A stretch of DNA of 64,000 bases, from assembly GCF_001194135.2 (NCBI RefSeq), contig NC_068985.1, positions 21,591,537 to 21,655,536 of the forward strand. Reading direction: 5' to 3'. The position numbers and the translations under genes are program-made. Origin of the DNA: Octopus bimaculoides (taxonomy: Eukaryota). The notes under the pieces were generated by a model. That model had not been told where the DNA came from. It saw only the letters and a list, made by a program, of their open reading frames with translations, and searched no databases. Below are positions 8,056 to 61,992 of the stretch, piece after piece (positions within the stretch are counted from its first letter, which is position 1; each line of letters begins with the position of its first letter).

Positions 8056-11000
8056 ATGGCTGGTAAAAAGAATAAGGAAAAGGTATGTTATTTTATTAGT
8101 TTTCTATTTTATTCAAGGATAATATCTTTTGAATATTTAATAAGCTGGTTAAAATTGAAATATACAACTTGAAAGTTAGCCAACTGGAGAGTCCACGTGT
8201 TCAAGCACATGTAATAAGGAACGAGACTGTTTCCAAATCTTTCGCCAACAGCAAATTAATAATTTCAAATTAAAAAAAGATCTCACTATAATATCAAGTA
8301 AATTGTCTTACGACATGAATTTTGCAGTTTTAGCCGTAAAATTATTTGATCAGCTGTGGAAGTTAAAAGATATTAAAACCTATTCCACGTGGTTAGTGAC
8401 CTTATCAAAAAACGAGAAGTGATTATTTAATCAAGTGCTGTTTATTTAATTTATTGAATTCTGTCTCCACTTTTGGGCTGAGCTTCGGAATAATTACCGC
8501 CTCACTCAAAAAGCTTATTTTTTCATAGAATCGTAATCTATTTAAACATCCAGAAAGTATTTTCGGAAGTAGTCAAAAAAAAAAAAAGCTACTTATGTAT
8601 TCCAAAATGGAGAAAGAAGCGAAGTTAATTTTTGCAGAATCGAAATGCCCCATATTTAAATTTTTAGAAATTAAATTAAAAGGTAACTGCCTGTTGTAAA
8701 TCTTAAAAGAGAAATATCGATATCTCCGTATTTATAGCCTATTTGAATTTATTAAAAATCTAAAAGTGACTTGAAAAATATTTTGTATAATCTAGACATT
8801 GGTGAAAGTGTGATGATATGGGACAAAAGTGGCGCAATTAAAATTGGTTATTGGTAATAAGGGAATGTGAAAAAAATAAATTTGGCATTTCTCAAAATCA
8901 GTAAATTCTTCATTACTTGGATTTTTAGAAATATATTTTTGTTGAAAAGGCGCCGCTGCCATAGCTGTTTTACGATTCTAATTTGTGTCATGGCTGGGGC
9001 GTCCACGTGTGTGAACTACGCAGAGTTGAATGGTGCGCTTGTGTTAGGGAGAGCCGCCTGCTTGACTGATTTCACATTAAACATTGCGGCGGTTATCGAT
9101 AAAATTGCGATTCAGACAAAAATATTGTTTCTGTGTTGTAGTGAATTAAGAATACATCACACTTTTTCTCATCGATTATTACAATATGTGTGAAATCGAC
9201 AATAGTAATTTTTTACTCGTAGACGTCAAGCTATGAAACGGATAACTGTTGAAACGAAGATCCCTAGTAGTTTCGAGTTCGGTTCCACTACTCACTAATA
9301 TGGGCAAGGGCAATTGTCCGTTTATAGTCTCTGGTCAACCGTTGTCATGTGAGCGAATTTGGTACGCAAAAGATCGACCTACATATATGTTTGTGCAGTT
9401 TCTATCGACTAAAGAGTAATTTGTTTGAAAAACCACTGCATCATAGCAAGGACGATCTCCATTAAATTGAAATTTTGTAACAACCAGGCGATCGGGAAAA
9501 TTTTCAGATTAACACTCGAACGATTTTCACTAGGGTTTTAGGGCCAGGGTTAGGGAATACCGTCCAAAACACCCTAGTGAAAATCGTGCGGGTGTTAATC
9601 TGAAAATTTATCGACGTTTGTTTCCGTATTGTAAGAGTAGATTGCATCGCATCTAATATGGTGCAATAGTGGGTTTACCTTAATGAAATTCCAGTTCACC
9701 ACGAGGTGGGCTTGTGAGAATTGAATTGGCTGCGGAGAAATTTATGTATTACAAAGAAAAAAATTCAGATGACACTTTAAGACTTGTGCTACAACATAAA
9801 GGTCTAATTACACGGATGCTCCAATAATTTAGTCTTTTCATTGAAGTTGATAATGGTGGAGCGAAAACAACTGCATTTATTCCAAAATCTGAGAAGTGCT
9901 TCAAAAGTTGTTTTTTTTATATTGATATAGTAGGGGAAAAAATTAATTCGTAATATGTATTTTTGTTTGGGCTATATTTGTTCAGTGCCCTACATAAGAC
10001 GCTAAAGATGTGTGGTTTGAGCAATCATTTTTAGGATGTTGATTGATCATATCAACGTTTTTCTCCCAAGTGTCATCTTGCTGGTTATTTTATTGTCCTG
10101 CATGCTTTCACGCATGCGCAACTAAAACGTTTCAAAACTTCCAGATGTCGGTGTGGGCATTCCGAAAGACAGGAATGACTTGGGAAATTGTTTTCAGAAT
10201 CGTGTAGTCTTGTCAAAAGAGTTACTTAGCTGGCGATTTTTGTTTCATTAGTTTTTAAGAAGCCAAATAAGATTTTTATATTTCCACTACTGTTGTTTCT
10301 AATTTTTAGTTGCACCACTTTTCTCTCATGTCACCGATATTTCTCAATGTCGCTGTTTTGGGGCTTTAGTTATTTCTGCTATGAACCAAGTTGATGGGAG
10401 ATTAGTAACTAAGTCAGTATCCACATTGACCAACCTTTGTCCGACCCATGATAGAAGTAGGAAAGTGGACGTGAAAGTAACGCTTTGATTCCCCTAAACA
10501 CTTCATTTTCTGTATTACATTCTGGCAAGCTAGAGTTCATCTTTGCTTTTCGTCCTTCCAGGATCAATTAGATTGGTGATCTTTCACTTGAAGATCATAA
10601 AGTGGAAGTGATGCAAATAGGCATTTAAACATTGATGCAATTAAAGTGAATGTTACTTGATATCGGTATTATAAACTCGAAAAGGTCCAAACATTCGTAC
10701 ATGACTGACAGTGAAAATTGAAAAGTCATCAAAAACATGGCTAAATATGAAATGGCCAAAGGAATTGTTATGATTCGTAACATTTTTTAAAATGGGTCCA
10801 AATAAGAATATGTAAACGGATACCTCCCTCACCTAAAATTTTTTTTTTTTTTTTTACGACATCCCACTTTTTAGGCGATGGAGATTGCTATTCTGAATTT
10901 TTTTTTCAAAAATGGCCAATTTCGATTAATCTCTTCATTTTTCCAGAATTTTTTTTTTTTTTGCGAGGCACGTATAAAAACTACGGAGATTATGATTCTG

Positions 11001-13393
11001 AAAAAAAAAAACATTTTAAAATTTCAATTCCCCCCTCCATCCTCAAGCAAGCTATTTACATGCTAGAGATAACAGCCGAAAAGGGTTTTGTTGAGAAGTG
11101 TGTTCGGAGATANNNNNNNNNNNNNNNNNNNNNNNNNNNNNNNNNNNNNNNNNNNNNNNNNNNNNNNNNNNNNNNNNNNNNNNNNNNNNNNNNNNNNNNN
11201 NNNNNNNNNNNNNNNNNNNNNNNNNNNNNNNNNNNNNNNNNNNNNNNNNNNNNNNNNNNNNNNNNNNNNNNNNNNNNNNNNNNNNNNNNNNNNNNNNNNN
11301 NNNNNNNNNNNNNNNNNNNNNNNNNNNNNNNNNNNNNNNNNNNNNNNNNNNNNNNNNNNNNNNNNNNNNNNNNNNNNNNNNNNNNNNNNNNNNNNNNNNN
11401 NNNNNNNNNNNNNNNNNNNNNNNNNNNNNNNNNNNNNNNNNNNNNNNNNNNNNNNNNNNNNNNNNNNNNNNNNNNNNNNNNNNNNNNNNNNNNNNNNNNN
11501 NNNNNNNNNNNNNNNNNNNNNNNNNNNNNNNNNNNNNNNNNNNNNNNNNNNNNNNNNNNNNNNNNNNNNNNNNNNNNNNNNNNNNNNNNNNNNNNNNNNN
11601 NNNNNNNNNNNNNNNNNNNNNNNNNNNNNNNNNNNNNNNNNNNNNNNNNNNNNNTCCATTAAAGAAAAAAAAAATTTAAGGGGGGGAAAGGGTTCCGGTT
11701 ACATACCTCCATCTGGACCTTTAAATGTTTAAACGTGACTATCTTATAAATAAGTTTTGCTTTCATATTTTCGTACTAGTGATAAATTATTTCGATATTG
11801 CATTATGGAGGGGAATGATTTTTTTCATTATTAAATTGATAATTCAGTTGGACCTTTTTATAACTCATTCGGGCATAACCCTTTGTTGATTTACCTCATT
11901 GGGCATTCTGCCATTTTAGATTGATAGATACAATTTGAGGGAGGTTTTTGGCTGCTACTTTTATAAAGTAGAGTGACTGTGCAGTGATTCCATTGGGCTC
12001 GATTTCGTTGCGGTGTTGCTTAATACGTGCCTAATTCATCCTTGTGATGAATTTGGCTGTCGTGGTTCCTTGCGTGTCGGTCCGTAATGCCATTGGCTCG
12101 AGGGGTATCGGAAATAAGCCTTTGGCTGCGATATCAGTTCGGTTTGGCCGTGTTTCGATAAAGGGTTACCGTGCAAACAAGTGGTTATCGAGTATTGCAT
12201 ATTCTGGATGCTGCAATGGAATTTCCTGTTTTGTGTGCAAGCTGGTGTCAACCTGGTCTTACAACAACACCCACTAACCAGTATTGTGAGTCTACGGTGA
12301 ATGCTAAGCTGCGCCATGAAAAGGGGTATGAGGTAATCATTATGTACTTTTCAAGTTAATAACTGTTTGTCATTGCACATTGCTCTGTTGTTTTATATTG
12401 AGTGGACATGCCATTTTAACCTTCTTGTACTTTAGCTGTTATGTAAATATCACACAAAAATATACCAAATTTTAAAGCGTTTCAGGATGTATCACAACCA
12501 GCAACTGTTCACAGAGTAATTGATTTTCAGATCATGGCCATATATTGTCTACAGTGGAAATTCCTCTAGTCCATGGGGTCACCAAACTACAGGCCACATG
12601 CCAGATCCAGCCTTCTGCCACTCTGTACCTATTGTGTAAGTGCTTGCAAAGAGAGTTCATTTGCCTCTGGTATGGCATCAGTGTTTGGAACAACTTCTGT
12701 CTAAGCAAACATTTTGAAAAGTAAAGTATGTGAAGTCAGCACATTGAACGAGGTTGACTGACAAGCATTTCCCTTGGTTGGATGCAGCAACTCCAAAGCA
12801 AATATTGATATTCTAGAAGCTAACCATGGGTTTCACAAATCTCACTAAGCTATTTTGCTGTTTAGTTTGTGAGATTCAGATATGTGTGTACTGGGTGTGA
12901 TATAGCTATCTTATTGCTATTATCGCCTTCTTCGATAACTTTTTGAGAAATAAATATTTTGGTTGTCTTTTTTTCTGTGTATTAATTGTGTTGAGCAAAA
13001 TAGTTACATGGCCCATGCTTGTTATTCCCTCTTATCTGGCCCCCTGTGTAAAAAGTTTGGTGATCCCTGCTCTAGTCAAGTGAAAATGTTAAACATTGCC
13101 TAATTTATATTATGATGGAAATACATTCTCTTGTCTTGAAACAAGATTTGAAGTATTTCTTGTGATAAAAAAACTGATTGCAATCCTGTGTAAATAAAAA
13201 AAAAAATTCTGCAGTTGCCAAAGGTACAAGCTAAAGTTTGAGAAAGTGAAATGGCTGTTGGGCTCAACAAGTTAATGCCTTCATAGATTTGATAATGAAC
13301 AGTTAAGTTGTGATTGGTTTAATGCAAGAAGCATTAAGAATTAAAAATTTTAGCACTTTGGCAAATTTAGATACAGGAAGCACTATATATATG

Positions 13394-13440
<47 letters not shown>

Positions 13441-13450
13441 NNNNNNNNNN

Positions 13451-13485
<35 letters not shown>

Positions 13486-16400
13486 TGTGTGTATGGTGAG
13501 ATTAAAGGTGACAAAATAACTTGGGTTCCTTATGCTTTATTTTAAGAAAATTTTATATATTGAATATATATTACAAAATTACTTAATGCTTCTGGTATTT
13601 TAGTCTCAACAAATGTTATGTATCTTGTAGAACCTCTTTTATGTACTATTTCAAATTGTTAATGCTTAAAATGACTTCTGTATATTTAATAAATTTTGAA
13701 TAGGACACTTATTTCTTACTCTTTTTTTCTAAAGCATGAATTTTCAAGAGCCTTAGGATGTGGCTACAAAATTTTTTGCCTTCATATTTTCGTACTAGTG
13801 ATAAATTATTTCGATATTGCATTATGGAGGGGAATGATTTTTTTCAATATTAAATTGATAAATCAGTTGGACCTTTTTATAACTCATTCGGGCATAACCC
13901 TTTGTTGATTTACCTCATTGGGCTTTCTGATACTTTTATATTTTAAATATAACTTTGACCATAGTGTCTTGATGTCTTTATAGTTGTATTGTTTCCTTGG
14001 TGTGCTAAACTAAAAGAATATTCTACATGGATTAAATTATATAAATTGCATAGCTACCTGGGCATTTAAATTTTTTTTTATGTAAAACAACAATTACAAT
14101 TTGTCAATGTGGCAGTTCATATTATGAATGCAAATACCAAGACATTTGCCTTCATTTAATTTTGAAGATAAAGAATAACTTCATTATTAAACTAATATTT
14201 GGGACATTTAACATGAAGTGGGAAGTTTGTGTCACAACTCAGGCAGGTTTGTATTAAAAGGGTTAAATTTTTAGGAAAAATAATTGTAAATAAAATTACA
14301 TTTTATAGTGTTTTTCAAATGTAAACATTGTATGTTTTCCAAGTTTTGATCCAGCAGAGTATACAATTTAATGTCTGTTGGCAGTCATTTTATCCTGAGT
14401 TCTGAAAGTTCCCAAAATTTACCCAGTTGCTGTATATGCTCTACTTCTGTGTTGGTTTCTATTTCAATTAATAATGTTTCTTTGTTTTAGGCTTCCAAAA
14501 AGACTGTTAAACCTGCCAAACCTGTAGAACCTGAAGAATCTTCAGAGGAGTCGTCTTCAGAATCAGAAATGGAAGTTGTGAGTACCTTTTTTTTTTTTTT
14601 AACACAAAACCTATCAAAGATTAGATTCGGTGTGCTTGAGTACAGATAAATCCTTGAATTAAATTTCATATTTTTATTTTAAAATAATTTCTCTCTGAAA
14701 CCTAAGAAGGTAGAATTACTTGGCAACCCAGTCCTGTCTTTTCTCCTTAAGTCATTTGCCATTTTTTAATAATAACCATAACTTATTCAATCACCTTCTG
14801 ATCAACATTGCTCCCTGTCTTTATCAACAATGTCTACTTCACTCACTTTGTCACCACTATCCACTTGCAAGAATTTGTACTTGTTCCTTCCAACTTTTTG
14901 TACATAACATAAATTGCCTCTGCATCTGTATAAACTCTGTAGATCTGTCTTGGGGTAGCTCTAAATTTAACTCACGACAGGTTGTATAGGTTGGTGGCTT
15001 GGTTGTAATTTGAGACCTGAAAAGTTTTTTTTCTTGCAGTTAGTGGATTGTTACACATGGACATGTTTACATGTGATTAAGAAGCTGGTTTCCTGACCAT
15101 GTAGCTTTTGGTTCAGTCCAACTACTTGGCACTTTTAGTACTTGTCTTCTATAGCACTGAGTTAAGTACTTTGTGAGTGGATTTGGTTGATGGAATATGG
15201 AGAAAGCTGTTCATGTATGTGAGTGCTCTTGCTTGTCATTGGTTTGAACAAGTATTGTTGGCTTTCAGTCTTTGATGTTTTGCTATGGCAAAATATTACC
15301 TTGCTTGTAATTCAATCTGATCCATGAATAAAGATGTATGCTGAAACAATTTTTTCTGATAGAAAAAATTTTTTTTTTGTTTTTAGGAAGCTCCAGTTGC
15401 TACAAAAGCTAAGAAGCAGTCAAAACAAAGCAAAGTTGCTGGTAAGATTTGATTTATATAATATTGTAATTGGTGTATAGACATGTTTTTATTGGGCTTA
15501 TGTTAGGGAATCAATTCACTCACTTCTCTGTAGTCTATCCTGGCAATGATGTTTAGGGTTTCCTGTAGGTTTTTTTTTGTTGTTTTTTTAACAAAAAAAA
15601 GCTAAATAACAGAAATATGTGAAGTGCTGTGCATTTTGTGTTTGTAATAAATGCCAGGAAGTTTGAGGTTAATCCTTTAGTGTTCAGATTACTCTGTCAA
15701 ATGTAATGCTTATTTATTCATATTGCTTTGAATTAATCTCGCATTATCCTCTGACTGAGATTTCAATGATGTGATTGCTTATTTTCATAATGACGTTGGT
15801 AAATGTGAGATACTGGATATAGTTAGTTTGAACATAGAACAAGTAGACTAATTAGGGTTGGATATGGCCAGTTTAAATGCTAAACGGTTAAATAAATGCC
15901 CATACTGGACTTGATGTACAAATTCATGAAATTTAAAAATGTTCTACCTTTAATAGCTATAATCTATTTATATCTGCTTTATTTTTGTAATAAATATTTG
16001 TTTTTGCTTTGTACAATAGCAAAGAAAAAGAAGGAAGAATCCAGTGACAGTGAAGAAGAAGAATGTAGTGAGGAAGAGGAAAGTGATAGTGAGGAGGAAG
16101 AGGAAGTAGAAGATAAGAAGAAAAAAGTAAAAAAAGAGACAGTAAAAGAGGAAAAGAAAGCAAAAAAAGAAGAAAAAGCCAAAAAGGTTGCTGAATCAGA
16201 TGATTCTGAAGAAGATTCTGATGAATCTGAAGAAGAATCAGAAGAGGATTCTAGTGAGGAAGATTCTAGTGAAGAAGGTATGCAAATCCTCAAAATATAT
16301 CTTGAATAAATTTTGTTTTGAAATGTTTTCTGATATTGACTAAAAACATCTTTTTACTTTATAGAATCAGAAGAGTCTCCTAAGCCAAAGCTCAATGGAA

Positions 16401-19400
16401 ATGCTGATGGTATTTAATTTTGGTTTTCTTTCTCAATTACCATTTTTGTACAGTTCATGTTTCCCATATGTATATAATTTAGAATTTAATATTGGTTTTA
16501 TAAACAGCTATAACCTTTTGTTGTGTTTTGGTAGTCATTACGCTAATAGTAATAACATGTACTGGTGTGTGTTATTGGCATGATAGCCGTCGCAAGGTAC
16601 AATGTGTGTATGTTATCGTTATTGGTGTAATGAGCTTCCCAAAACACGGGATTTGTTTCAAAATGTTGAGCCTCATGACAGACCTTTGGCGATATGCTGT
16701 CCTTGTGAAGACTTGTCAAGCCAAGTGAAATCATAGTCATGGCCATTGCCAGTGGTGTGTAAAAAAAAAAAAAAAACACCCATTACACTAGGAAGGGCAT
16801 CCAGGGGTAGAAGCCATGCCAAATCAGACTGGAACCTGGTAAAGCCCTCCGGTTTGCCAGCGAGGAAAGTGGCCATTAAATGATATGTGTAGTATGATTT
16901 TTTTATGGAAAACAGCTATGTACACTTTTTATTTGTGAGGTAGTTAGAAATAGAAACTTAATTACATTGTTTGTATCTGTGTAATCATTTTGTCTTCAAC
17001 AGGTTCAAAAGAAGCTAAGAAGCGTAAAACAGAGCCAGAAAATGGTAACGATGCCAAGAAAGCTAAAGTTGATGGTAAGATTTACTTTGGTTTGTGTGCA
17101 TGCTCCAAAGTTTTGTGGTTAGAAGTTCTACAGCTTCTATCAGGAAAAGCATTCTGAGACACACTTTCATATCTTAATGTAATAATGTGGCTGTTTATGA
17201 GCATACCTTGTTTCATTTATTATCCTGAACAAAAATTACTTAAGCTTGCTTCACTACTACGTGGTTCTGGGCTCAGAGCCAACCAAATCCTTGTGAGTAT
17301 TCGGTGAATGGAAGCTGAAAGCCTGTTTATATATATATATATATATGTGCGTGTGTGTATCTCCCTCCATTCCCCCCTGTTACTGCACGACAACCAGTGT
17401 TGGTGTGTTCCTGTAACTTGGCAGTTCAGCAAAAGAAACCAATAAAATAAGTACTAGCCTTTAAAGAATAAAACCTGGGGTTAGTTTATTAGACTAAAAC
17501 CCTTAAAGGTGGTGCTCCAACATGGCTGCAGTCTTATGACTGACACAAGTAAAATATTAAATTACTTAATCGGCTTTTAATGCCACATCCCAAACGAATT
17601 GATCCAGTGATCAATTATGGGATCATTTCATTCCTGCTTGGAATCACTTTGTAATTATGCTTTGAAGAATCTTGTGAATTAAAGTCTGGTATCAAACTGC
17701 ATGGTGGAGATGTATTGCTCACATTATCATCTCCAAGATCTTATCTCTTATTAAGCCCTTAGCATTCAGATGTTTGCCAAGTATGTTTATTTATTAGCAC
17801 CATTTTGAATTAATCACGTGGCTTTGAGATTTTAGGGTAGGTAGAATATTTTGGCCAGGATTTTCTAAAATAAGACTAAGCATTGCTTCTTGCTTGGAAA
17901 ATTCCTTTGTTGTCATTTCTACTTCCAAGCAAACTTCTCTTGAATTGCAGCTATGTGTGATCCAGGACAAGGTGGCAAATGTGTTTACTTGTGGTACAGG
18001 AGTTGAAATTGATAGAAATAATAAATTTGATAAATGATAAGTTACCACTGACAATATTGTTGGTTATTATGAAAGAAAGCTGATGTTGAATTTTTCAATT
18101 ATTCCTTTTCAGAGTCTGTAACAGTTATGTGCAGAAATATTCCTGAGGAAGTGACTGCTGAGGCCTTTGAGAAATTTCTTAAGAAGAAAGGAATTGAAGT
18201 CTCATCTGTTCGCAAGCGTGAGGACAGAGCGTATGTATTACAATTTCTTGTTAGCTGTTTTACATTTTATAGGCTTTTTGTTATGCATATTCACTTTGTA
18301 TTGTTTTATATTCACTCATTTATATTGCTTTCTGTTATAGATTTGCCCACATTGACTTGGCTAATCCAGATGATCTTGATAAAATTTTAGCAATGCAAAA
18401 TCTTGACTATAAAGGGTCTGCACTGACATTTGAGAAAGGTCGGCCCAAGAGACCAAAGGGAGAAAGAAACACGGGTACGTTGATTTTGTTTGTACAATAA
18501 GAACTCGAGGGAAAGAAAATCATAGATACAATGTCCTGTTGGTAGACTGAACAGTACACAACAGTTTATGCTTTTTTTCCCCAGGTGATGAATCAAACAC
18601 ACTATTTCTGAAAAATCTACCTTATGATGACTCAGAAGATAGTCTTAGAAGCAAACTGATGGAGATATTTCCTGAAGCACAAAGTGTCAGAATTCCCTAT
18701 AAAGGAGATTCACATAAGGGGTAAGATTACAATATCTTTAATTTACAGTGTGCCATTTATATAATCATTTGCTATGATTGTCTTTAGTGTTTTAAAAAAA
18801 ACAAACAAAAGTGTGCTTATTTTTTGTGCTATAGTCTGTTTTGGCCCTTTTGTTACCAAAAGCGCCAGTAGTAACCCATTCATGTTTTAATGAGAATTTC
18901 GGCATTAATCTCACTACATTCTTATGGTTTCATTTAAATACCCAACATAATGGCAGATAGTTACACTATCTGCCATTATGTTGGATATTTCAGCACTGAG
19001 TTTGAGTTCAAAGTATTTTCAAAACGAGACTGAAAATATATGGCAAAAGCCACATCTTTGGTAATGAATTGAGTATTTATATGTCCGAAAGTGAAACAAT
19101 TTGGCCAGTTCTTAGGACGGTATTAGACCTATCCAATCTAAAGAAACAAAACCATTAGAGTGTTTACTTTTTTCTTTGAATCAATTACTGCAGGAATTAT
19201 TAAACAGGGGAAAAAAAAAAAGTTGTGGCTTCCCACAATACTTAAAAGAAAGTTACATCCAAGCACTTCTAGGAGTATTGTGAATGTGTATATATAGATA
19301 TACATGCATTTGATTTATAATTGCTTTTTTTTTTTTTTTTACCTATAAGGTGCTTGACAGGGTTTGAATTGTGAATCACTATGTTTCTGTGTATAGTTTG

Positions 19401-27762: not shown

Positions 27763-27791
27763 AAAAAAAAAAAAAAAAATGGTTTATATAC

Positions 27792-44055: not shown

Positions 44056-45572
44056 GAATTCAGTGTGTCACTCTTGCATACACACACACACGTGTGAGTA
44101 CATACATATATATATGTGTTGGTGTACATACATACATATGTACATACATACATATATATATGTAGGCACATACATATGTACACACACATATCCTTCTCAT
44201 AATGAGTCACAGAAAAGTTTCCAGAAGGAGGCTTTTTTGGTAAGTATATAATATAATTCATGTCTTAGTTTGTTATGACAAGGGGAACTACAAACTAACT
44301 AAACAATGCTGTGAATGCATGGTATCAAATATTTATTTCAAGAATTTTGAAGAATTGCAATTTTGTTTTGTTCTTGAACTAGTTATTGTTAATGCATTTG
44401 AGAAACAATATGAAATTTGCTACATATATCATAATTGGCAATATTGAAAAAAAAAAGGAATTGAAGAAGAGAAATGAAAGGAAAGAAGTTGGGATAATAC
44501 AGGTGAAGGTGAAACAGGTAGAATAAGGTGTCCAAGTAAAATTGATAAATTCTAGTTTAGAGTACAAACATGTAGACAAGATACTAGTTCTAATTTGTGG
44601 GGAATATAAACAAGTGCATCTAATTGATTAGTTGTAGAGAAGAAGTAGAAATTTATTAAAAGGTGTCTCTGATTTGATGGTTTGGCTTGAAAAACATAAA
44701 GCCATGAATGGGCTTAAATATATGACAGAGTGAAAAGTTCTGGGTTTTGGGGACAGAGTATGGTAACTGGCTGCTGTTGTTAAATAGTGTGATTTTACAT
44801 TTATCTGAAATAAAAGTAAAGTTAATGATAGAACATTATATATAAATCAATGTAACTTAGATTTGAGGGGGAAAGAAATTAAATCAAAATGAATGTCTGT
44901 AGAACAGTAAGTTCATGAGAAAGAATATGAGGCCTGATAAGACCGAAAAATTACTGTTGCTTTCTCTAGTTGCTTTAAACTGCAGCTCCATTCCAATCAA
45001 TTCTAATCTATTCTGGATCCATTCTAATCTTCGCAGTCTATCTTATCTAACAATTTCGATCAACTGATCTTATTGGAGTTATTTCCCTTCCTATACCAGT
45101 ATGCAGAATACGCTCTGAGATATTTTCCCATCAGCCATTTTATCGATAGTGCATTTTGCTTGAGTTTAAGGTTCCTTTCTCTGTTGTGTATAGACGTTCG
45201 AGATTTCATACGCATTATTAGAGTTGACTTTTATTTGCTCTTCCGCCAACTTTTGAAATCTCAAATACAGTACTTCATTGTTATAAAAAAAAAAAAATCT
45301 TAAATGTAATATTTTGGAATGATATTAGCCTGCAATAAGTAGTCTAGGTGAAATTTGAATTAATAATTGTTTCGTTACTAACAACCATTATCTCTATAAT
45401 AAAAACAAAATCAAATTCTGGAGATATTTATTCAGTAAATACGAAACTATATCATAGTGGCTACGCCATAAAGTGAATTAGACTGTGCACACGTATTCAT
45501 TCTTCTTTTACAGAGAAAATTCAGAGCAAGTGACATTTTTGTTCGATATAATATTCCAGAAAACAAAGTGAA

Positions 45573-51500: not shown

Positions 51501-54500
51501 AATCTCTATATACTCTGAATCCGCAGCATCTAAGCAGTATTCGTTAAAAATTTCATTAGAAAGTATCTAGTTTTCTGGAAGTTATGAGGCAACAAAGTCA
51601 GCGGGGTACACATCTGTAGTTATGCCATTGCTATAAAATGTTTGTTTCATTTTCAAAATAGTTCACAAAATTCAAGCATCTAACAGAATTTTGATGCAAC
51701 TGTTTTCAAATTGTGAACCATTGTTTGCCCCGTCAATAATTTGTAATTTATGATTTGAATGTATTTATATTTTTGCACATGTTTCTTATAATTTAACTGT
51801 ATCAATGATCATTTATTCTTGTATACTGAGAATTTTTGTTTCCAATGCTGATGAATTTCATGTATACAGTAAGGTCCTCCCAGTCTGAGCTTTGTGCAGA
51901 TTATGGTGTCATTTATGTTAATATTATATGAAAGATACACTTCTTTGCATTCTTTTTAAAGTAATAAATCATAAACCCCCTCTGATTTTATGGCATTGTA
52001 AAGTTTAAGAGCAAAACATGTTTGTTTTCATAAGAAATCAAACATCACTAACTTGGAAGACAATTCTTTTTAGCGAAAAGTTTGAAAAAGTTTAATAATA
52101 ATAATAATAATAATAAACCTATTATTAGACAACTTCTCTGAAAGTGAACCAAAGAGTCTTGATGTGTTAATATAAAATTAAGAACCAGCAGAAAAGATGA
52201 AATTTTGTACAGAAAAATACCTGTTTGTGTTGATAGTTGTTTCAATTAGTATTTTTATTATTTGTACTAGACTCCAAAAAAGTCAGTAAAACCTGTCAAA
52301 CCTGTAGAACCTGAAGAATCTTCAGAGGATTCCTCCTCAGAATCAGAAGAAATGGAAGTGGTAAGTTATTTTATTACTCTTTTCATTTTGCTTTATTTGT
52401 ATCAAAAGTCTAGCAGACCTCAATTATGAATAAAGTAGCATGGTACCTGTAAAATTGATGATCTTTGAGTTTGGAACATGTAAGAAAATTTTTTGGATAG
52501 TGTGTATATATAGTAGAAAAGATTATTATGGTGGTGAGGTAGCAGAATCGTTAGTACTCCAGGCAAAATGTTTAGCAGTATTTCATCTGTCTTTACATTC
52601 TGAGTTCAAATTCTTCTGAAATTGACTTTACCTTTCATCCTTTCAGGGTTCATAAAATAAATACCGCATGAACATTAGGGTTGATGTAATTGACTTAACT
52701 CCTCCTCTGAAATTGCTATCTTTGTGCCAAAATTTGAAACCATTATTGTTTTATATATATATATAAAATGTGCATTTCTGAATTAGCCCAAGGGCTGACG
52801 ATATACTCAGTTGAGTTCAATTAACTGTATACATAACCTGAATATCCTTCTGCCAGTACTTCTGTACGAATGTTGGTATTTGTCTATAATAGTTGTGCAT
52901 GCATTTTAATTCAGACCTAACCTGGTGCTTTACCTTTAAGTGCCTTATTCATCTGACTCTTAATACACACACACACAAACACAAATATGCATATATATCT
53001 TACAGACTCATATACAGAGATGTATTCAATGAGTTGAGGCAGCAAATTGCCTTGCAGTCTCTTCAATACTCTAATGTATTTATTTTGTCTTCTGTGCATT
53101 CATCATCATCATCATTTAACGTCCATTTTCCATGCTGGCATGGGTTGGACGGTTTGACTAGGGTCTGGGAAGCCAGGAGGCTGCACCAGGCACCAATCTG
53201 ATCTGGCAGTGTTTCTACAGCTTGATGCCCTTCCTAACGCCAACCACTCCAAGAGTGTAGTGGGTGCTTTTTACGTGCCACCAGCACAGAGACCAGAGGA
53301 GCTGGCATCGATCATGATCGGATGTGCTTTTTACGTGCCACTGGCACAGAAGCCAGTCAAAGTGGCGCAGGCATTGGCCACGTTCGGATGGTGCTTTTTA
53401 CATGCTACCGGCAAAGGGGTCACAACTACAATTTTCACTTGATTTGATTTTGATGTTGATGTACTTGACTCAGTAGGTCTCCTCATGCATAGCATGTCAC
53501 TCTACGATCCAAGGTACTTTTGAGTGAGCTGGTTATGCAACACTGGTGTGGGTTACAGCTGTGAACTCACTTTATTTGCCAGGTCTTCTCAGTCACAGCA
53601 TATCTCCAGAGGTCTCTGTCTTTCGTCATTGCCTCTGTGAAGCCCAATATTCGAAGGTGATGCTTACATTCCTGTGACTTAGCAGTTTGGCAAAAGAGAC
53701 CAATAGAATAAGTACTAGCCTTACAAAAAAATAAGTTCTGGGTTTGATTTGTTCAACTAAAGGCAATAATCCAGCTTGGCCGCAGTCAAATGACTGAAAC
53801 AAATAAAAAAGAATAAGTGAAAAAAGAATATCTGCTTTGGAAATGTTTTATTTTACTTATGTTTAACCTGCAGCTGCAAGTTGCATGTCAAAAGCAGTTG
53901 TAGAAAATATGAAATTTTACCTTGTGAATTTGCAGTTTACAGTAGTGATGCTTCAAATAAAAAATTTTCAAATATGCTTAAGAAAAAAAATATTGCTTAT
54001 TTTTAGGAAGCTCCTGTTATGAAAACTAAGAAGCTGACAAAAAGCAAAGAAACACTTGGTAAGGCTTGACGAGTATTATCCAAATATAATAATGATTTTT
54101 TATTTGTTGTTACTCTAAGGAAGTAGTGTGAAAGTGAAAAGCTGTCAAAGGATTGAGAGTGACTGAGGGTAGAAGTGAAATGAAAACGAGTGGAAAGATG
54201 AGTTGTTTCTCTGTTACATTTGACTGGATTATTAAATGGGAAAAGTTAGCAAGAGAATTTAGGTGAGAATGGGTTAGAGTAATAAATGTAACAAAGGATT
54301 AGTGAGTATCTGTCACAGTTGGAGTTTCATTGACATGGCTTGAATGAATATGTGTATATCAAAAGTTTTAGTCTTTTAGAATTTAAACTGGCCACATTTG
54401 CCTCAAATATTCTACCCATTTTATGTTCAAACCAGCCAAATCTGGCCTTTCATTCCTGTCTTACAATGTCATTCTAAAAATAAACAATCATATCATTGGG

Positions 54501-57500
54501 TTCTTGAAGCAGGATTAATTCGAAATAATGTGAATAAAACAAACATTAGATTTGACAATAATTTGAATGTTAAAGGGTTAACACCCACTTTTCTATCCTT
54601 GCCTGAGGTAGATGAAATTCAATGCAGACATTCTACAGCTGAATGCACATCCTGTTGCTAACACTTGCCTGCTTTCAGCAAGGAGTGTCTATAGGGGTGA
54701 AATTCGAGATTTTATTGGGGTTTTCCCATAGGTTTTTCAAATAATCTGGATTTGCTGATTTTTTTATTTGTGAAATGTGTTCTGCTTACAGTCGTTTATA
54801 GTCTTGTGATTTGTGAGTGATATAAGGAGTCCAAGGCGGAATATTTTACTCTATATTGGATTTGATGTACACATAGAAGAAACTTGAATTTTTCTGCCTT
54901 GAATAGATTATACTGCTTTATTCTTTCGATAACAACTTACTTTTGTTTTGCATGTAGCTAAGAAGAAGGCAGAATCTAGTGACAGTGAGGAGGAAGAAGA
55001 AGAAGAAGAAGAAAGCAGTGAGGATGAAGAAAGTGACAGTGATGAAGAGGAGGAGGAGGAAGATGAAGAAGATGATGAAGATGAAGATGATGATGAAGAA
55101 GAAGAAAAGGGAAAGGTGAAAAAACCTGTAGCAGCTGCTGAATCTAGTGACTCTGATGAAGAGGATTTTAGTGAAGAAGAAACTAGTGAAGGTATACAGC
55201 CTTTTTAGTCAATTAATAATTGATAACAAATTAAGATCTGTCTTGGAAAATAATTTCACTAGCAAGTGTTTTTCTTTTATTAAACTAAAACATAACATCT
55301 TTGCTTTAAAATTTAGATGATACTCCTAAATCAAAGGCCATTGGAAAATCAAATGCTAAACAGAAAGATGGTGAATATTTTCAATTTGTTTTTAATATTC
55401 TGCTAATCTGTGGTTTCTTCTAGTATTTTTAATCTATTCAGTTTTTCTTTGCTAAATAACTGGTATAACATTCAGAATGTTTGATACATTATCTTGGTTT
55501 CTTATTACATTTTTAGATCACTTGATTTCATTTCATATATTTAGCTGTAAATCATTGCATATGATTCTTATATGAAGTTTCCTTTATTTATGGTTTAATT
55601 TCTCTATTTATGAATATTTAATAATGTTTCATAACTGCTACATAGACTGTTGTTTCTATTTATTAACTAGTTACAAATAGAATCTTAATGATGTTAGATA
55701 TACTGGTAAGATCTTTTCAATTTTTGTCTACAACAGGGTCAAAAGAGGCCAAGAAGCGTAAAAAGGAAATGGCTGATGGTAAAAATGCCAAAAAAGCTAA
55801 AGTTGATGGTAAGGAAATTTGAATTTTGAAAGTTTAATGCATACATGTTCAAACCAACTAGTGAATATGTATGTATTGACTATTTTGTATATAAATAAGT
55901 ATCACTATGAGTTTTTGAAAAATTTTAATCCAACTTCTATTATACTTATTCTTGGAGAGAATCCAAAAAGAAACATTTTGATACCTCATTTGTGAAATTT
56001 AGATGAATATTTTATGAAATACGACAATTTGAATGGTCAGCAAATTAGTCAAAACCTTGCTTAATTAGGTTTAAATTAATAATTAGCCATATTTGTGAGG
56101 TCATGTCTTTGAAACTGAGGTGATAATCATCTTCAAATTACACAGATTAAAAGTGTTCGTGGGATAGAAGTTGCCTACTTTTTGGGGGTGCAATTTTAAA
56201 AATATTTATGTAAAGTCTATTTTGTTGCATGTAACAAACAGTCGATTTCACAGTGTTTTTGGACCTAACTAAATCCAAAAGTACAAGCCATGGGGATTTG
56301 AATTTTAGGACATGATACCATTCCAATAAAATTTTAATGGCCTATTAAAATTGGCTACAGACAGTTGAGTTTCATATCAGGATCCCATACAAATCAGATT
56401 GTCTCCATTTTGACAGGGATTTTTCCGATTTTTTATATATTTTACCACAGCCTTGGAAATGATGTGGGGAAGCTTTTTATGAAAAAAAATTTTGGAAAGT
56501 TTGTGATTTTTTTCTTCCCCCTACCCTTCATTACCTGGATTTTGATTTTTTTTTTTTTTTGCACTATGAACTTGAAAAGGATGGAAGGTGCCTTTTCAGT
56601 AGAAAAAAAAAATGTTTTTGAAAATATTTTCAAACAAAAAAACGTGATTTAAGGGAGAATTAGCTGTTGCTTCTAACACATCCCACAGCCACCTGGTACC
56701 TTCCTCGTTTCTTTGTCACTCTGACATATATTGATGTTTTTCAATAGTTTTTCTCTCCATAAACACATTTTATTGATTGATGATATGAAAGAACGCAAGA
56801 GTTTTTTTAACCAAGGGTAGTTAGTTCATTGTGAGATTTAAGCAATCAAAAAAAAAAAGAAATTTGTAATCTCCTTTAACACACACACCTTTACACCTAG
56901 CATTTTTTTCTTAATAGATTTGTTTTTTCTTACATATACATATGAATGGCTAGTCAGACTGGTGTTTGACAAGTAGCATCAGTATGCATTAATCCTATAT
57001 GGGCAGCCATGGTAGTCCCCTTTGTATTGACTTTGTGTTTTTGCACCATTTCATAGTCAGATTCACCAATGGCTGTATTGAATTCATGAGAAATTTTTCT
57101 TTCTTATGACATAAAAGTCTTGAAGAAAATAAGTTCTTTTCTAACAGTAAAATTTTCATTTTTATATTTTATAATGATTATCTGACCTACCTCCAGCAAT
57201 TTTTTCATTAAGATAAAGCAAAAAAAAAGTCTCCTTCATGAGTGTATCATTTTCAACATAAATCAAGTTATAGTGCTCAAACACATTGAACTAGAACAAG
57301 GTCTACCATTCAGCAGTCAGAAACAAAAAGTGGGACAAACATTTTGAATGGGTGGAAATATGATTGTGATTGAGAGGACCTGGCATGATATGGAAGTGTC
57401 AGATTTTGATGAAAAGTATACGAGAAGAAAGTTCACGTCCAGAACTTTCTTTCAAATGGTATAAAACTGTCAACAGGAAAAAAATGTATTTTGACATCAG

Positions 57501-60500
57501 GCAAAAAGCGTGTTTTTGCGTAGTCAAACTGTGCTTGTCTCCTTTCTACAGAGCTCTAGAGTGATACCTAATATAAGCTCTTTTTGAATTTTTTTTATTC
57601 ATAGAAATTGTAATAAAATATGAGTTGATATTGGTTATTGTTCATTATTTACTGCTGACTATATCATTGGTTATTGTTCATTATTTACTGCTGACTATAT
57701 CATTGGTTATTAAAGTAAGCTAATATTGAGTCTTTATTTTTTAATCTTCCTTTTCAGAACCTGTTACTGTTCTGTGCAGAAATGTTCCCCAGGAAGTGAC
57801 CATTGAGAAGCTTGAGAAATTTCTTAAGAAGAAGGGAATTGCATTTACATCTGTTCGCAAGCGTAATGACAGAATGTGTGTATTACAATAGTTTATTAGC
57901 CATTTTACATTTCGTATCCTCTTCTCTACTTTATCCTCATTCATTTTTATTGCTTTCTGTTATAGGTTTGCCCACATTGACTTAGCTAATCCTGATGATC
58001 TTGATACAGTTTTAGCAACGAAAGATCTTGAATATAAAGGGTCCACATTGGCATTTGAAAAAGGTAGACCCTTAGGGGCATCAAAGCCAGAAAGGACTAA
58101 GGGTATGTTGATTTGATTTCCTGAATTTTTTTTTTTTTTTTTTTGCACAAGATGTCCTGTTGCGTTGATTCACCGAACACTGCAAATTTCAGTTGAAGTT
58201 GATGAACTTTCTTTTTCTCTTCCCTTTCTGCAGAGGACGATTCAAAATCCCTGTTTGTGAAGAATTTGTCCTTTGATGATTCAGAAGATAGTATCAGGAG
58301 CAATCTGTCGGAGATATTCCCTGGTGCACAAAATGTTAGACTTCCATTCAGGGGAAATACACATAGAGGGTAAGCTTTATTGAACTGCATATCAATTAGA
58401 GAATCATTTGTTTGGATGTTCTTGTTTTGTCATATTAGATAAAGGTGTTTTCAGAAATATTGTAAAAAGCAACTAGACTTTTAATAGTTCATATAAGAAA
58501 GGGCTTGTCAAAAATTTTAGAAACGAGAGGGTTCCCATGCGCAAGGCTTAACTCAAACTATTGATAATATTGGTAAAAACTACTGTGTATGTTTTTGTCT
58601 TATTATTATTTTTTTTTTTTTTTACACCTAGGTTTGCCTACATTGAGTTTAGTAGTGCTGAAGAAGTAAAGGATGCTGTTGAAAATAAACAAGGGGTTGC
58701 GTGTGGGGACCAAAAATTGTTCTTGGATTACGCAAGTGGTTCTTCAAAAAAAAGAAGAGGTGGCTTTAGAGATGGTAAATTTTTCTTTTTTCTTTTTTTT
58801 TTTCTTTTTATGTATTTGTATTTGTTAGAGATTCGGATCGAAAATAACTCAAGTTAGTGTTTGCATTAATATCCTATCATCATCAACATCATCATATGTC
58901 TTTTTTCCAAGCTGGCATGGGTTCAACAGTTTAATTGGAGCTGGTAAGCCAGAGAGCCCCACCAGGCTCCAGTTGTCTGTTTTGGGTTGGTTTCTATGGC
59001 TGGATGTCTTTCCTAATGCCAACCACTTCACAGAGTGTACTGGGTGCCTTTTACATGTTACCAGCATGGGTAACTTGCAAGATAAAGGCATCTTGGTTGA
59101 GAGAGGGAGTGAATCAAGGGGAGTAGTTGTATGCCAGACAGGAGGTTGGAGTATGATAGGAGGACAGAGATAGTCATCTTACTAAGAGGGATTATTTGGC
59201 TATCCTAGTAGGAGAAGGGAGTTGGGGGAAAGAAATAGATGGTGTGGGGATGTATTGGAGTCTATCCACAGGGGAAAGTGGAGGGGGTATAAGTTGTGCA
59301 GAGGGGATAGAGAGGGATGTTCCATGTGAGTGTGAGGGTATGTGTTTGGGGATGAGGAAGACATGACTGTAGTAAGTTATAATGAGGGAAATTGAAGTGG
59401 TTGGGAAAGAGGTAGGGAAGATATGTGAGGGCATGGGGAGACACATGAGAGAGTGGAGGAGCCTGCAGCATGAGGGAGAGTAGAGGGGAGGAATCTGGTG
59501 GCAGTTTGACAGGAGTCAGGTATTGTGTGTGTTGGGTGGGGGGATATGGCTGAAAAAGACATGCATGGATATATGGATAACCACAATCTCAAGCAGGCAA
59601 ATTGCCAGAAGTCTCAGACTTTTGTCATCTCTAAGAGGCTCAACAACCAACGATCATATTTCACCACCTCGCTTCACATCTTGGGTTCCTTGCACAGGTT
59701 CCTTTCACAGTTAGGGATCAGTACTTCTTTATGCAGCTGTTCTCATCCATACCAGCACATTCTTCTGTCTTGTACACTACGTCTGATGCCTCTCATAGCC
59801 ACTACACACACACCCTTGATTTTTTTATATTTTAGATCAACCTGAAGAATCCAGTGTGCTGTTAGTTAGAAATCTATCCTATGATTCAACAGAGGATTCT
59901 TTGCGATCATGTTTCAAAGATGCTACTGATGTACGAATACCAATATTTTCAGATACTGGAAAGCCAAAAGGGTATGTAAAAATAACTGCATTGCTTAGGA
60001 TGTTTTTAATTTCTGGCTGATCATTTGTATATTTTCCTTTTTAACATCAGTTATGTTGATTGCTCTTGAAAATGACATTTATTTATTTTGTTTAGAATTG
60101 CTTTTGTGGAATTTGAATCTACATCAAAAGCTAAAAATGCTTTAAACAAACATGATGACACTAACATTGATGGCAGAAATGTTCGATGTTACTTTGCTAG
60201 AAGCAGAGGTGAAGGTGATGGAAGAAGTGGAGGTACAGTAACTTTTGATTTACCTCATTTTGTTAGAGTAGATTGTGACATCTGATACAATCTGATTGTA
60301 TAGGGTGTTGGTCTGAAATGTTTTAAATATTGGTATATTTTGTTTAATTGTGTTCTTTCTTCAGCTTTTATGCAGTAAACATGTTAAAATTATATTCAGA
60401 TAATTGAACTTCTAATATCTTTGTGTCTCTAAACATAGACATTGAGCTCATCACTACAGGCAGGTGTCAATAGACAGTTCTTTTTTTCAGGACCAACAAA

Positions 60501-60808
60501 GATATTTGCTGACTTTTGTTAACATCTAGCAGTTTTGAGGTGTCTGTATGAGAAATTCTGTTCATGACCGTCATAATTTTATTTAGTGGCTAGTTCTCTT
60601 TTACTCTTTTACTTGTTTCAGTCATTTGACTGTGGCCATGCTGGAGCACCGCCTTTAGTCGAGCAAATCGACCCCCAGGACTTATTCTTTGTAAGCCTAG
60701 TACTTATTTTATCGGTCTCTTTTTGCCGAACCGGTCTCTTTTTTGGGGACATAAACACACCAGCATCGGTTGTCAAGCGATGGGGTGGGTGGGGTGGGAC
60801 AAACACAA

Positions 60809-60843
<35 letters not shown>

Positions 60844-61992
60844 CATACATACATACATACGATGGGCTTCTTTCAGTTTCCGTCTACCAAATCCACTCAC
60901 AAGGCTTTGGTCGGCCTGAGGCTATGTAGAAGATACTTGCCCAAGGTGCCACGCAATGGGACTGAACCTGGAACCATGTGGTTGGTAAGCAAGCTACTTA
61001 CCACACAGCCTATTTTTTTATCACACTTTAACCTTTAAGTCCTTTTATTACCATATTTCTCTTGAATCACACTACCTTTGTTTTAATTATTTTTGAAAAT
61101 AATGAATTTATTAACATAACTTAGTCAGGCGTGGATTTATAGTAAAAAGTTTGCTTCCAAGCTTGGGTTCAGTTCCACTGTGTGTCACCTTGGGCGATTA
61201 TCTTCTACTATAGCCTCAGGCCAACCAAAGCCTTGTGACTGGATTTTTGTAGACAGAAATTGAAAGAAGCTTGTCGTATATATGTGAGTGCGTGTGTGTG
61301 CATTTGTATCCCACCACCAGTTAACTAGTGTTGGTGTGTTTACACCCTGTAACATAGCAGTTTGGCATAAGAGATTAATAGAATAAGTACTAGGTTTTAA
61401 AAAAAAGAAGTCCTAGGGTCAATTCATTTGACTAAAATTCTTCAAAGTGGTGCCCAGCATGGCCACTGTCTAATGACTGAAACAAGTAAAAGAGAAAAGA
61501 TTATTATTAAGTTAATGTATGGAATATAAATTAAGATGAAATTTTGATGCAAAGTTTAATTTAAAACAAGAAATTTCTATCATAGAACCAAGGGCAGTTT
61601 TAAGTGGATTTGTATTAAAAAGGTTAAACCTTGTATAAAACAGATTGTTATTAGATTGTTTTCAGGAGTTAAGACATGTGATTTTCTTAGTTTGAAATTT
61701 GATTGTGCAGGTTATAGTGGTGGACGTCGTGGTGGTGGCAGTGGTGGTTTTGGCAGACGTGGTGGTGGTGGTGGTGGCAAACGTTATGGTGGTGGTGGAG
61801 GACAAAGTAGCTTTGGAGGTATGTAAGACCTTTTTCTTTCTTTTTTTTTTGATCTTGTGTTTTGTATTTGAAGTTTGAGATAAATAAATGAATATTAATT
61901 TACTTCTGATATTTTCTAAACAATTTTTTTTTTTTGCTTGTTTGTTTTTTAAAGGAACAGGGAAGAAAAAGACCTTCAGTGATAGCGACTGA
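45573..61992 (+). CDS. NCL: Nucleolin-like copy C, 14 coding exons, ~491 aa
   Basis: Exons 45573-45593, 52271-52360, 54007-54058, 54958-55191, 55317-55370, 55737-55808, 57758-57875, 57966-58102, 58234-58369, 58632-58774, 59836-59971, 60096-60232, 61711-61818, 61955-61992. GT-AG, 1476 nt, open frame. NLS KKRKKEMADGKNAKKAK resembles vertebrate KRKKEM...AKKQK; three RRMs; short GAR; ends GKKKTFSDSD. Confidence 0.93.
46420..46703 (+). other. Conserved intron-1 non-coding element, copy C
   Basis: As copy A, with private deletions of ~25 nt and 6 nt in the middle. Confidence 0.9.
46804..47460. mobile_element. Foldback-type inverted-repeat element
   Basis: 24-bp TIR with one mismatch (46804-46827 / 47437-47460), ~190-bp inverted arms (~46940-47125 / ~47260-47436) and a second nested inverted pair (~46821-46890 / ~47150-47223). 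Confidence 0.85.
47800..49270. repeat. AT-rich inverted-repeat family (GATTCTGAAAAA / CACGTTTT / GCTAGAAATAACAGCCAAATC motifs)
   Basis: ~47940-48150 is an inverted copy of ~49030-49260. Related segments at ~8520-8760, ~10780-11110, ~49590-50690, ~51250-51600 and ~56360-56790, often next to assembly gaps. Confidence 0.6.
57630..57711 (+). repeat. 36-bp tandem duplication (2.3 copies) in copy C intron 6
   Basis: ATTGGTTATTGTTCATTATTTACTGCTGACTATATC twice plus ATTGGTTATT. Confidence 0.9.
59600..59810 (-). mobile_element. RTE LINE 3' coding-end fragment
   Basis: Reverse complement parallels ~33370-33600; a similar fragment lies at ~53470-53665. Confidence 0.6.

Follow-up and report, generated by a model that had tools for sequence, protein, structure and literature searches.

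A three-gene nucleolin cluster in Octopus bimaculoides that probably predates the Octopus–Argonauta split, and a conserved block in its first introns

A 64,000-nt stretch of the Octopus bimaculoides genome (NCBI RefSeq assembly GCF_001194135.2, contig NC_068985.1, positions 21,591,537 to 21,655,536 of the forward strand; herein the window, with positions counted from its first base) carries three paralogs of nucleolin, a central and abundant ribosome-biogenesis factor that, to our knowledge, is single-copy in most animals. The paralogs, herein A, B, and C, form an inverted local cluster in which A lies on the plus strand, B on the minus strand, and C on the plus strand, B and C being head to head. 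The cluster very probably represents an old three-gene family that has been retained under purifying selection; its products are in all likelihood RNA-binding proteins of the nucleolus that are expressed and whose roles are in part separate. An initial annotation, made from the window alone, had described three intact nucleolin paralogs between 8056 and 61992; these positions coincide exactly with the start codon of A and the stop codon of C.

Gene models and protein features

Paralog A was located by spliced protein-to-genome alignment with a purpose-written aligner, the query being XP_014779554.1 ("nucleolin-like isoform X2 [Octopus bimaculoides]"), a protein first reached via a crude translation of the RRM exons. 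Over 13 plus-strand exons that run from 8056 (ATG) to 21218, the query is matched with 100% identity. Comparison of the window with itself reveals two further copies, at approximately 43300 to 27800 (minus strand) and approximately 45500 to 62000 (plus strand), whose exon boundaries were taken from an exon-by-exon DNA alignment of the three copies. The A-templated spliced alignment is sound for the RRM exons; the micro-exons of 12 to 27 nt that it yielded in B and C were rejected as products of that procedure in the low-complexity N-terminal part. The resulting models are listed below.

8056..21221, plus strand: paralog A, ATG to stop, 14 coding exons, 523 aa
8056-8082, 14491-14577, 15387-15441, 16020-16277, 16365-16409 (cassette), 17003-17074, 18113-18230, 18341-18474, 18585-18720, 19749-19906, 19994-20129, 20245-20372, 20905-21084 (Gly/Arg-rich), 21184-21221, plus strand: exons of A
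43247..27792, continuing into an assembly gap, minus strand: paralog B, ATG at 43247, 13 coding exons visible, 527 aa so far
43227-43247, 40474-40545, 36715-36769, 35425-35625, 35263-35307, 34881-34922, 30745-30862, 30500-30645, 29624-29756, 29263-29402, 29021-29156, 28752-28888, 27792-28127 (Gly/Tyr/Ser-rich), minus strand: exons of B
45573..61992, plus strand: paralog C, ATG to stop, 14 coding exons, 491 aa; model identical to XP_014779558.1 (P0093)
45573-45593, 52271-52360, 54007-54058, 54958-55191, 55317-55370 (cassette), 55737-55808, 57758-57875, 57966-58102, 58234-58369, 58632-58774, 59836-59971, 60096-60232, 61711-61818, 61955-61992, plus strand: exons of C

Exon phases are the same in the three genes (0,0,0,1,1,1,1,2,1,2,1,2,1,1), all internal exons have an AG acceptor and all donors are GT, and no in-frame stop occurs in any modeled exon. 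Length differences between the copies are all in-frame; exon 6, for example, measures 42 nt in B vs. 72 nt in A and C. The curated models therefore bear out the matching phases and open frames reported initially. All three paralogs have a small phase-1 cassette exon, exon 5 (A, 16365-16409, 45 nt; B, 35263-35307, minus strand, 45 nt; C, 55317-55370, 54 nt). It is skipped in RefSeq isoforms of A (P0001 and P0015) and C (P0013), which indicates alternative splicing, and the A isoforms also differ by an alternative donor in the Gly/Arg-rich exon. C-type mRNA is made and spliced as modeled, whether in O. bimaculoides itself or in a very close relative: an assembled, spliced contig of 1184 nt (run SRR16213284) encodes an uninterrupted C-type protein and matches the C exon 8-12 junctions, as well as exon 14 with its 3' untranslated region (3'UTR), at 96 to 99%.

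Each protein contains three RRMs. Pfam RRM_1 matches A and B in three stretches (E = 7e-32 and 6e-35, respectively) and C with E = 6e-29; in C two stretches pass alone, and its first RRM can be aligned to the corresponding domains of A and B. The top noncephalopod matches are named nucleolin, nucleolin-like, or NCL (vertebrates, among them fishes and birds, E ~1e-59; Mytilus NCL, 2.9e-58; Dreissena, 2.6e-42). The N-terminal regions of A (183 aa; 63 Asp+Glu, 41 Lys+Arg) and C (176 aa; 67 Asp+Glu, 34 Lys+Arg) have the alternation of acidic and Lys-rich segments expected of nucleolin; that of B (147 aa) is acidic (51 Asp+Glu) but has 17 Lys+Arg, and the alternation is present in part. Between the acidic region and the RRMs lies a putative nuclear localization signal (NLS), which in A and C reads KKRK, then KKAK 10 to 11 residues on, and in B, following a 30-nt in-frame deletion, is the single cluster KKRKK. 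The tail comprises 79 aa with 6 RGG and 7 Phe in A and 58 aa with 2 RGG in C; that of B is a variant of the Gly/Arg-rich tail, at least 122 aa long, with 0 RGG and with 64 Gly, 13 Arg, 18 Tyr, and 18 Ser in RSGGYGG-type repeats. By these sequence-level features A, B, and C all qualify as putative nucleolins, B being a variant in its tail and basic blocks.

Protein identities between the paralogs are as follows.

A and B: RRM core, 67%; N-terminal region, 43%
A and C: RRM core, 69%; N-terminal region, 62%
B and C: RRM core, 75%; N-terminal region, 55%

Divergence is concentrated in the acidic, NLS, and Gly-rich regions, as had been proposed: the N-terminal regions share 43 to 62% of residues vs. 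67 to 75% for the core, and the tails differ. In nucleotides the RRM core is 76 to 82% identical between paralogs (18 to 24% divergent), in agreement with the exon divergence of ~20% first noted. The tail of B from Argonauta hians (146 aa, 0 RGG, 19 Tyr) is of the same type as that of O. bimaculoides B, which argues that it is a conserved B-specific feature and not decay; the two A proteins, from Octopus and Argonauta, have 6 RGG and 1 to 2 Tyr in the tail.

Ancestry, constraint, and rival explanations

Synteny and gene trees, examined for Octopus sinensis and Argonauta, recover the same three-gene arrangement and orthologous B and C clades. On the O. sinensis chromosome A lies at 25.655 to 25.659 Mb, a 601-aa minus-strand gene at 25.669 to 25.687 Mb, and C at 25.692 to 25.708 Mb; the 601-aa gene occupies the B position, and its first and last exons match B. 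A single contig of Argonauta hians carries C (leftward), B (rightward), and A (leftward), the mirror image of the O. bimaculoides cluster. Orthologous coding sequences (CDS) rebuilt from the genomic loci are all open (A and C of O. sinensis; A, B, and C of Argonauta), and Argonauta B is a complete 14-exon open reading frame (ORF). O. sinensis A (fetched locus L001, 507-13604) is a full 14-exon open gene, for which the RefSeq protein XP_029636317.1 is a 334-aa fragment starting from MCRN in exon 7. Database matches by type are listed below.

O. sinensis: A-type, yes; B-type, no protein in the set searched; C-type, yes
O. vulgaris: A-type, yes; B-type, no protein in the set searched; C-type, yes
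Argonauta hians: A-type, P0018; B-type, P0100 (552 aa, 70% identical to B over 97% of its length); C-type, P0017

A neighbor-joining tree with 500 bootstraps was built using lophotrochozoan nucleolin-like genes as outgroups (Mytilus NCL, Dreissena, Tegillarca, and Capitella; a single representative per species), and support was read as unrooted splits.

All octopod copies: 100%
B clade: 100%
C clade: 96%
B+C: 75%
A+C: 21%
A clade including Argonauta A: 38%
Three Argonauta copies together: 0%

Because the B and C clades are supported, the Argonauta copies never group together, and synteny is conserved, both duplications are placed by the sequences before the Octopus–Argonauta split, and the expansion is at least octopod-wide and not confined to O. 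bimaculoides. The lineage-specific expansion that the initial annotation had proposed is thus real, yet older than was implied. The orthology of A rests chiefly on synteny, given the low support for its clade.

B and C are probably sisters with A outside, a relationship that is moderately supported. Self-BLAST identifies an inverted repeat (43128-43415 vs. 45690-45408; 78% over 288 nt) whose arms span exon 1, proximal intron 1, and ~170 nt upstream of each ATG:

43128..45690, no strand assigned: head-to-head B/C region, ~2 kb of unique sequence with a microsatellite between the arms

The upstream homology was not found in A, and the homology between the B and C 3'UTRs (27268-27467 vs. 62282-62090; 76% by self-BLAST) has no A counterpart. 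The 3'UTR block extends over ~200 to 250 nt (27219-27467, minus strand; 62057-62291, plus strand), and the Argonauta B 3'UTR (L003, 29169-29450) matches it at 73 to 76%. At the center of the head-to-head region is a TA/CA-rich microsatellite tract (44070-44220) in which the CpG count is zero. The sister relationship had originally been drawn from promoter and proximal intron-1 homology; the upstream and 3'UTR homology and the 75% bootstrap uphold it, whereas the strongest intron-1 block (B 41923-42460 vs. C 46805-46297; 89%) is no evidence for it because A carries the block too (84 to 85%).

Selection was assessed from the ratio of nonsynonymous to synonymous substitution rates (dN/dS) by NG86, O. 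bimaculoides being compared with Argonauta.

A: RRM core, 0.165; whole CDS, 0.19
B: RRM core, 0.120 (also given as 0.10-0.12; the lowest of the three); whole CDS, 0.20
C: RRM core, 0.165; whole CDS, 0.22

Across the three copies the core values span 0.10 to 0.17. The synonymous rate (dS) between Octopus and Argonauta orthologs is 0.7 to 1.5; saturation, if present, would make dS underestimated and these ratios overestimates. Compared with O. sinensis, O. bimaculoides has a whole-CDS ratio of 0.44 for A and 0.41 for C.

The window is AT-rich (35% G+C) and contains five runs of N.

11113-11654: assembly gap inside A intron 1 (8083-14490)
13441-13450 (10 N): assembly gap inside A intron 1 (8083-14490)
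49283-49589: assembly gap inside C intron 1 (45594-52270)
50691-51247: assembly gap inside C intron 1 (45594-52270)
27479-27762, minus strand: assembly gap that should hold the remainder of B intron 13, the last coding exon of B (~12 codons plus stop), and the start of its 3'UTR

Four of the five, those in intron 1 of A or C, leave coding sequence untouched, and the sole consequential gap is 27479-27762. A TA/CA-rich microsatellite tract (13360-13510) flanks the 10-N gap of A intron 1. From 35573 to 64000 the window matches O. bimaculoides chromosome CM046605.1 (GCA_001194135.2) at 100% identity with identical gaps, so the chromosome-level assembly contributes no extra sequence at the locus.

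The consequential gap opens ~30 nt past the GT donor of the Gly-rich exon 13 of B (27792-28127), the end of which reads ...CGAAACAGTATTG/GTATATAAACC(T)n (here and below, a slash marks the splice boundary); the N run starts within the T run. The last exon encodes GTGRKKTFSDSD and a stop in A and GTGKKKTFSDSD and a stop in C, and no counterpart for B is present in the window sequence. In O. sinensis B the matching exon-13 end is followed by an intron of ~150 nt and an intact last exon (GTGKKRTYSDSDR, then a stop). Since both flanks of the gap are collinear with O. sinensis and the corresponding stretch there (226 nt vs. an estimated gap of 284 nt) holds the exon and stop, the last exon of B almost certainly sits inside 27479-27762; it would resemble GTGKKRTYSDSD with a stop and lie ~150 nt after 27792. 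With this exon in the gap, the intactness of B is not fully demonstrable from the window: the description of three intact paralogs holds for A, for C, and for 13 of the 14 exons of B, exon 14 of B being placed by comparison with O. sinensis.

Several observations weigh against an old family kept by purifying selection. Between the two Octopus species dN/dS in the RRM core is fairly high (A, 0.55 to 0.69; C, 0.78), on few substitutions (dS 0.05 to 0.16), and the A clade that includes Argonauta A is supported at only 38%. The last exon and stop codon of B, being in the gap, are absent from the sequence; the B proteins of O. bimaculoides and O. sinensis were not found in the protein set searched, and no B-type spliced contig was present among the protein-search matches; the annotation of B is shaky, as the RefSeq-type model opens with an implausible 9-nt "MWL" exon in a repeat. 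An exhaustive representative search surfaced no squid, cuttlefish, or Nautilus sequence, returning octopod representatives and then fish, mussel, and protist multi-RRM proteins. Some of these points would suit a B that is decaying or nonfunctional, i.e., a unitary pseudogene in the making whose divergent N terminus and tail result from relaxed constraint: B is the most divergent copy N-terminally (43% identity to A), its last exon is unseen, its transcript did not appear among those matches, and its automatic annotation is odd. We nevertheless consider decay unlikely: each of the 13 exons that can be seen has an open frame and intact GT-AG boundaries, neither of the other copies has so low a dN/dS in its RRM core, the Argonauta ortholog is a complete ORF, O. 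sinensis B retains its last exon and stop codon, and the unusual composition of the tail is conserved between Octopus and Argonauta.

A recent expansion, specific to O. bimaculoides or to the genus Octopus and followed by fast divergence, could be argued from the core dS between paralogs in O. bimaculoides (0.58 to 0.74), which is no larger than that between Octopus and Argonauta orthologs (0.70 to 1.40). The corresponding value within Argonauta is 1.2 to 1.4, however, and the contrast is compatible with a faster rate in Argonauta, with recent duplication not required; given the one Argonauta ortholog per copy, the conserved synteny, the B and C clades, and the three Argonauta copies that never group, a recent origin is contradicted by the Argonauta locus and is very improbable. 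An assembly artefact (uncollapsed haplotypes or mis-joined scaffolds) is effectively refuted. The assembly derives from short reads, has five gaps in this region, and retains its contigs and gaps unchanged at chromosome level, but the copies differ by 18 to 24% in their most conserved exons, their N termini and tails are quite different, each has its own ortholog in the tree, and the independently assembled genomes of O. sinensis and Argonauta hold the same genes in the same order and orientation; the initial argument against haplotype duplication is thereby strengthened.

For the favored history, that of an old retained family, the ancestral octopod nucleolin would have had 14 coding exons, an acidic/basic N terminus, an NLS, three RRMs, and a Gly/Arg-rich tail. 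A first duplication would have given A and a B/C ancestor, which then duplicated in inverted orientation, promoter included, to form the head-to-head pair, both events preceding the separation of Octopus and Argonauta. Of the present copies, A retains the canonical alternating acidic/Lys-rich N terminus, two-cluster NLS, and F/RGG tail; C is reduced in length, more acidic, and short-tailed; B has lost most Lys blocks, has a single-cluster NLS, and carries a long RSGGYGG-type Tyr/Ser/Gly tail in exchange for the RGG tail. From the sequences we infer that B is expressed, that the proteins function in the nucleolus, and that the roles of the copies differ. Functional divergence, which the initial annotation had also suggested, is best, if indirectly, backed by the peculiarities of B (few Lys blocks, single-cluster NLS, and a Tyr/Ser-rich, RGG-free tail), as these are kept in Argonauta B.

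A conserved noncoding block in intron 1

Intron 1 contains, in sense orientation, a conserved block of ~330 to 500 nt in nine of nine nucleolin gene copies from O. bimaculoides, O. sinensis, and Argonauta.

12012..12400, plus strand: block in A intron 1; 92% identical to the O. sinensis A copy
41925..42455, minus strand: block in B intron 1; 99.2% vs. O. sinensis B (500 nt) and 89% vs. Argonauta B (484 nt)
46297..46805, plus strand: block in C intron 1; 96% vs. O. sinensis C and 95% vs. A and B in the 323-column core
L001 4260-4673; L004 3747-4245 and 10712-11211; L003 10813-11293; L005 4087-4427; L006 3638-3995: copies in the fetched loci

Across the nine copies, 188 of the 323 columns of the core alignment are invariant. 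The O. bimaculoides paralogs are 91 to 95% identical in this core vs. 76 to 82% in the RRM exons, and B of O. bimaculoides and Argonauta are 93% identical in it vs. 84% in the coding core. The 99.2% identity of the O. bimaculoides and O. sinensis B blocks compares with an average of 93% in the surrounding region, and around the B block Octopus–Argonauta conservation spans 41601-42542 (78% over 971 nt). Apart from the B/C 3'UTR block, no other nonexonic, nonrepeat sequence in the gene bodies can be aligned between Octopus and Argonauta. In Argonauta the A and C blocks (L005 4087-4427 and L006 3638-3995) are 99% identical to each other yet 82 to 85% identical to those of Octopus A and C, which points to gene conversion between Argonauta A and C; it would be limited to the block, the coding cores of the two genes sharing 70% nucleotide identity. 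The block lies in a 5' domain that is not depleted of CpG: observed/expected CpG peaks at 1.4 to 2.3 in or beside it (up to 1.45 for the A block) vs. a window median of 0.29. Within the block is an invariant GGGTATGAG/GTAA motif resembling a 5' splice site, with a conserved C(T)4-6 run ~15 nt later.

A series of identities for the block were considered and rejected. Its indels are not multiples of three, and every Argonauta copy has a TGA interrupting the sense frame left open in Octopus, which excludes a protein-coding exon; the antisense ORFs differ between copies, and for one of them, of 93 aa, there is no transcript contig on record. A small nucleolar RNA (snoRNA), 7SK, or other structured RNA was rejected in view of the Rfam, covariation, and folding results: Rfam gave no match at gathering score and no consistent weak match across copies, the covariation term from RNAalifold on the nine copies was +1.17, a single pair out of 65 being compensatory (a comparison of low power, as the sequences vary little), and folding z-scores of +0.66 (sense) and +0.89 (antisense) show no excess stability. 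Paired NF-Y (CCAAT) boxes fail because the two GCCATTGGCT motifs are without the CCAAT core in Argonauta A and C, and a cassette "poison" exon fails because no conserved acceptor lies upstream of the donor-like motif. Nor, to judge from the window and six fetched loci, is the block an interspersed repeat or transposable element: the 64-kb window has three copies, and every match at the fetched loci lies in sense orientation in intron 1 of a nucleolin gene, whereas genuine short interspersed element (SINE)-like repeats occur at least nine times in the window.

For C, the RefSeq isoforms P0092, P0095, and P0097, from O. bimaculoides and O. sinensis, lack the first 34 or 31 residues and begin at the Met that closes exon 2 (52271-52360 in C), a residue conserved in all copies; an alternative 5' exon bypassing the ATG exon is thereby implied for C. 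Together with the invariance of the core, the CpG-undepleted domain, and the donor-like motif, these isoforms form the basis of a tentative reading, which we hold possible but doubtful: the block may be a new family-wide regulatory module, most likely an internal promoter with a noncoding first exon or else an intronic enhancer, kept near-identical in the three paralogs since octopuses and argonauts parted, partly by gene conversion, and coupling the expression of three diverged nucleolins, with B as a new kind of nucleolin carrying a Tyr-rich low-complexity tail. Directly downstream of the C block lies a CpG-rich inverted repeat (46811-47436; arms 46938-47126 vs. 47436-47251, 90%) with internal direct repeats; this segment does not align to O. 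sinensis C intron 1 and may be a species-specific foldback insertion.

Annotation, related nucleolins, and significance

The gene called at B in the chromosome-level assembly encodes 580 aa and starts at 48473. On the minus strand, 48465-48473 reads ATGTGGTTG/GTAAGC (MWL plus a donor) and falls within a SINE-like repeat in C intron 1; we regard this start as a probable artefact of annotation and favor the conserved ATG exon at 43247. Automatic names, which place "nucleolin isoform X1/X2" on different genes, obscure the paralogy. The repeats in the window are as follows.

1295-1489, 26574-26885, 31009-31308, 33645-33865, 34292-34428, 37534-37833, 53100-53390, 58877-59066, 63828-64000: SINE-like repeat family, ~170 to 310 bp, at least nine copies, 75 to 94% identity
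2444-2571, 4283-4434, 48450-48595, 60840-61010, 62501-62672: second repeat family
32216-33343, plus strand: ORF fragments resembling the reverse transcriptase of long interspersed elements (LINE type), within B intron 6 and antisense to B
23564-25133: 65%-similar copy of the LINE-type fragments, in the A-B intergenic region

Copies related to the SINE-like family also occur in the Argonauta loci, at ~70 to 75%.

Vertebrate nucleolin (NCL, or C23) shares with the octopus proteins an acidic Ser/Asp/Glu and Lys-rich N terminus, an NLS, tandem RRMs, and a Gly/Arg-rich tail, but it has four RRMs and one gene, in contrast to three RRMs and three clustered paralogs in octopus. The vertebrate gene has ~14 exons, and its strikingly conserved intron sequences are the snoRNAs U20, U23, and U82; the conserved octopus sequence is instead a block of intron 1, ~330 to 500 nt, without Rfam match or structural signal. 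The lophotrochozoan homologs are 32 to 37% identical to the octopus proteins and, unlike vertebrate NCL, also have three RRMs; the three-RRM core of Mytilus NCL, Dreissena, and Tegillarca aligns end to end with the octopus profile in one stretch and that of Capitella in two. In Arabidopsis, NUC-L1 and NUC-L2 are diverged, dispersed nucleolin duplicates with two RRMs, different expression, and partly opposing roles in rDNA regulation. Such plant pairs may serve as a precedent for subfunctionalized nucleolins, diverged paralogs having been kept in both cases; they differ from the octopus genes in RRM number and in being dispersed, where the octopus copies form an inverted local cluster.

An analogy for how the tails of A, B, and C could matter comes from Caenorhabditis elegans. 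A report on its nucleolin homolog and GAR1 describes RG/RGG repeats that differ in type between nucleolar and P-granule proteins and contribute to sub-nucleolar phase separation (PMC9633708). By that analogy, the differing tails, that of B being Tyr/Ser/Gly-rich and devoid of RGG, suggest that the octopus paralogs may be sent to different compartments or partners.

The main finding is a well-supported but ordinary gene-family expansion, a modest result given that RefSeq already uses the name nucleolin for A and C and that a gene model exists at B; no description of nucleolin paralogs in cephalopods, or of the intron-1 block, was found in the literature searched. Its practical use lies in correcting annotation, namely the names that hide paralogy, the truncated O. 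sinensis A model, and the B model that opens in a repeat. The block is the less expected part, being noncoding, more conserved than the exons, present in all paralogs, and homogenized in Argonauta. Octopods have long possessed three versions of nucleolin that differ precisely in those disordered regions to which control of nucleolar partitioning, of contacts with histones and chromatin, and of arginine methylation is ascribed, and the three-gene cluster would thus offer a natural experiment on the role of the disordered regions of nucleolin.

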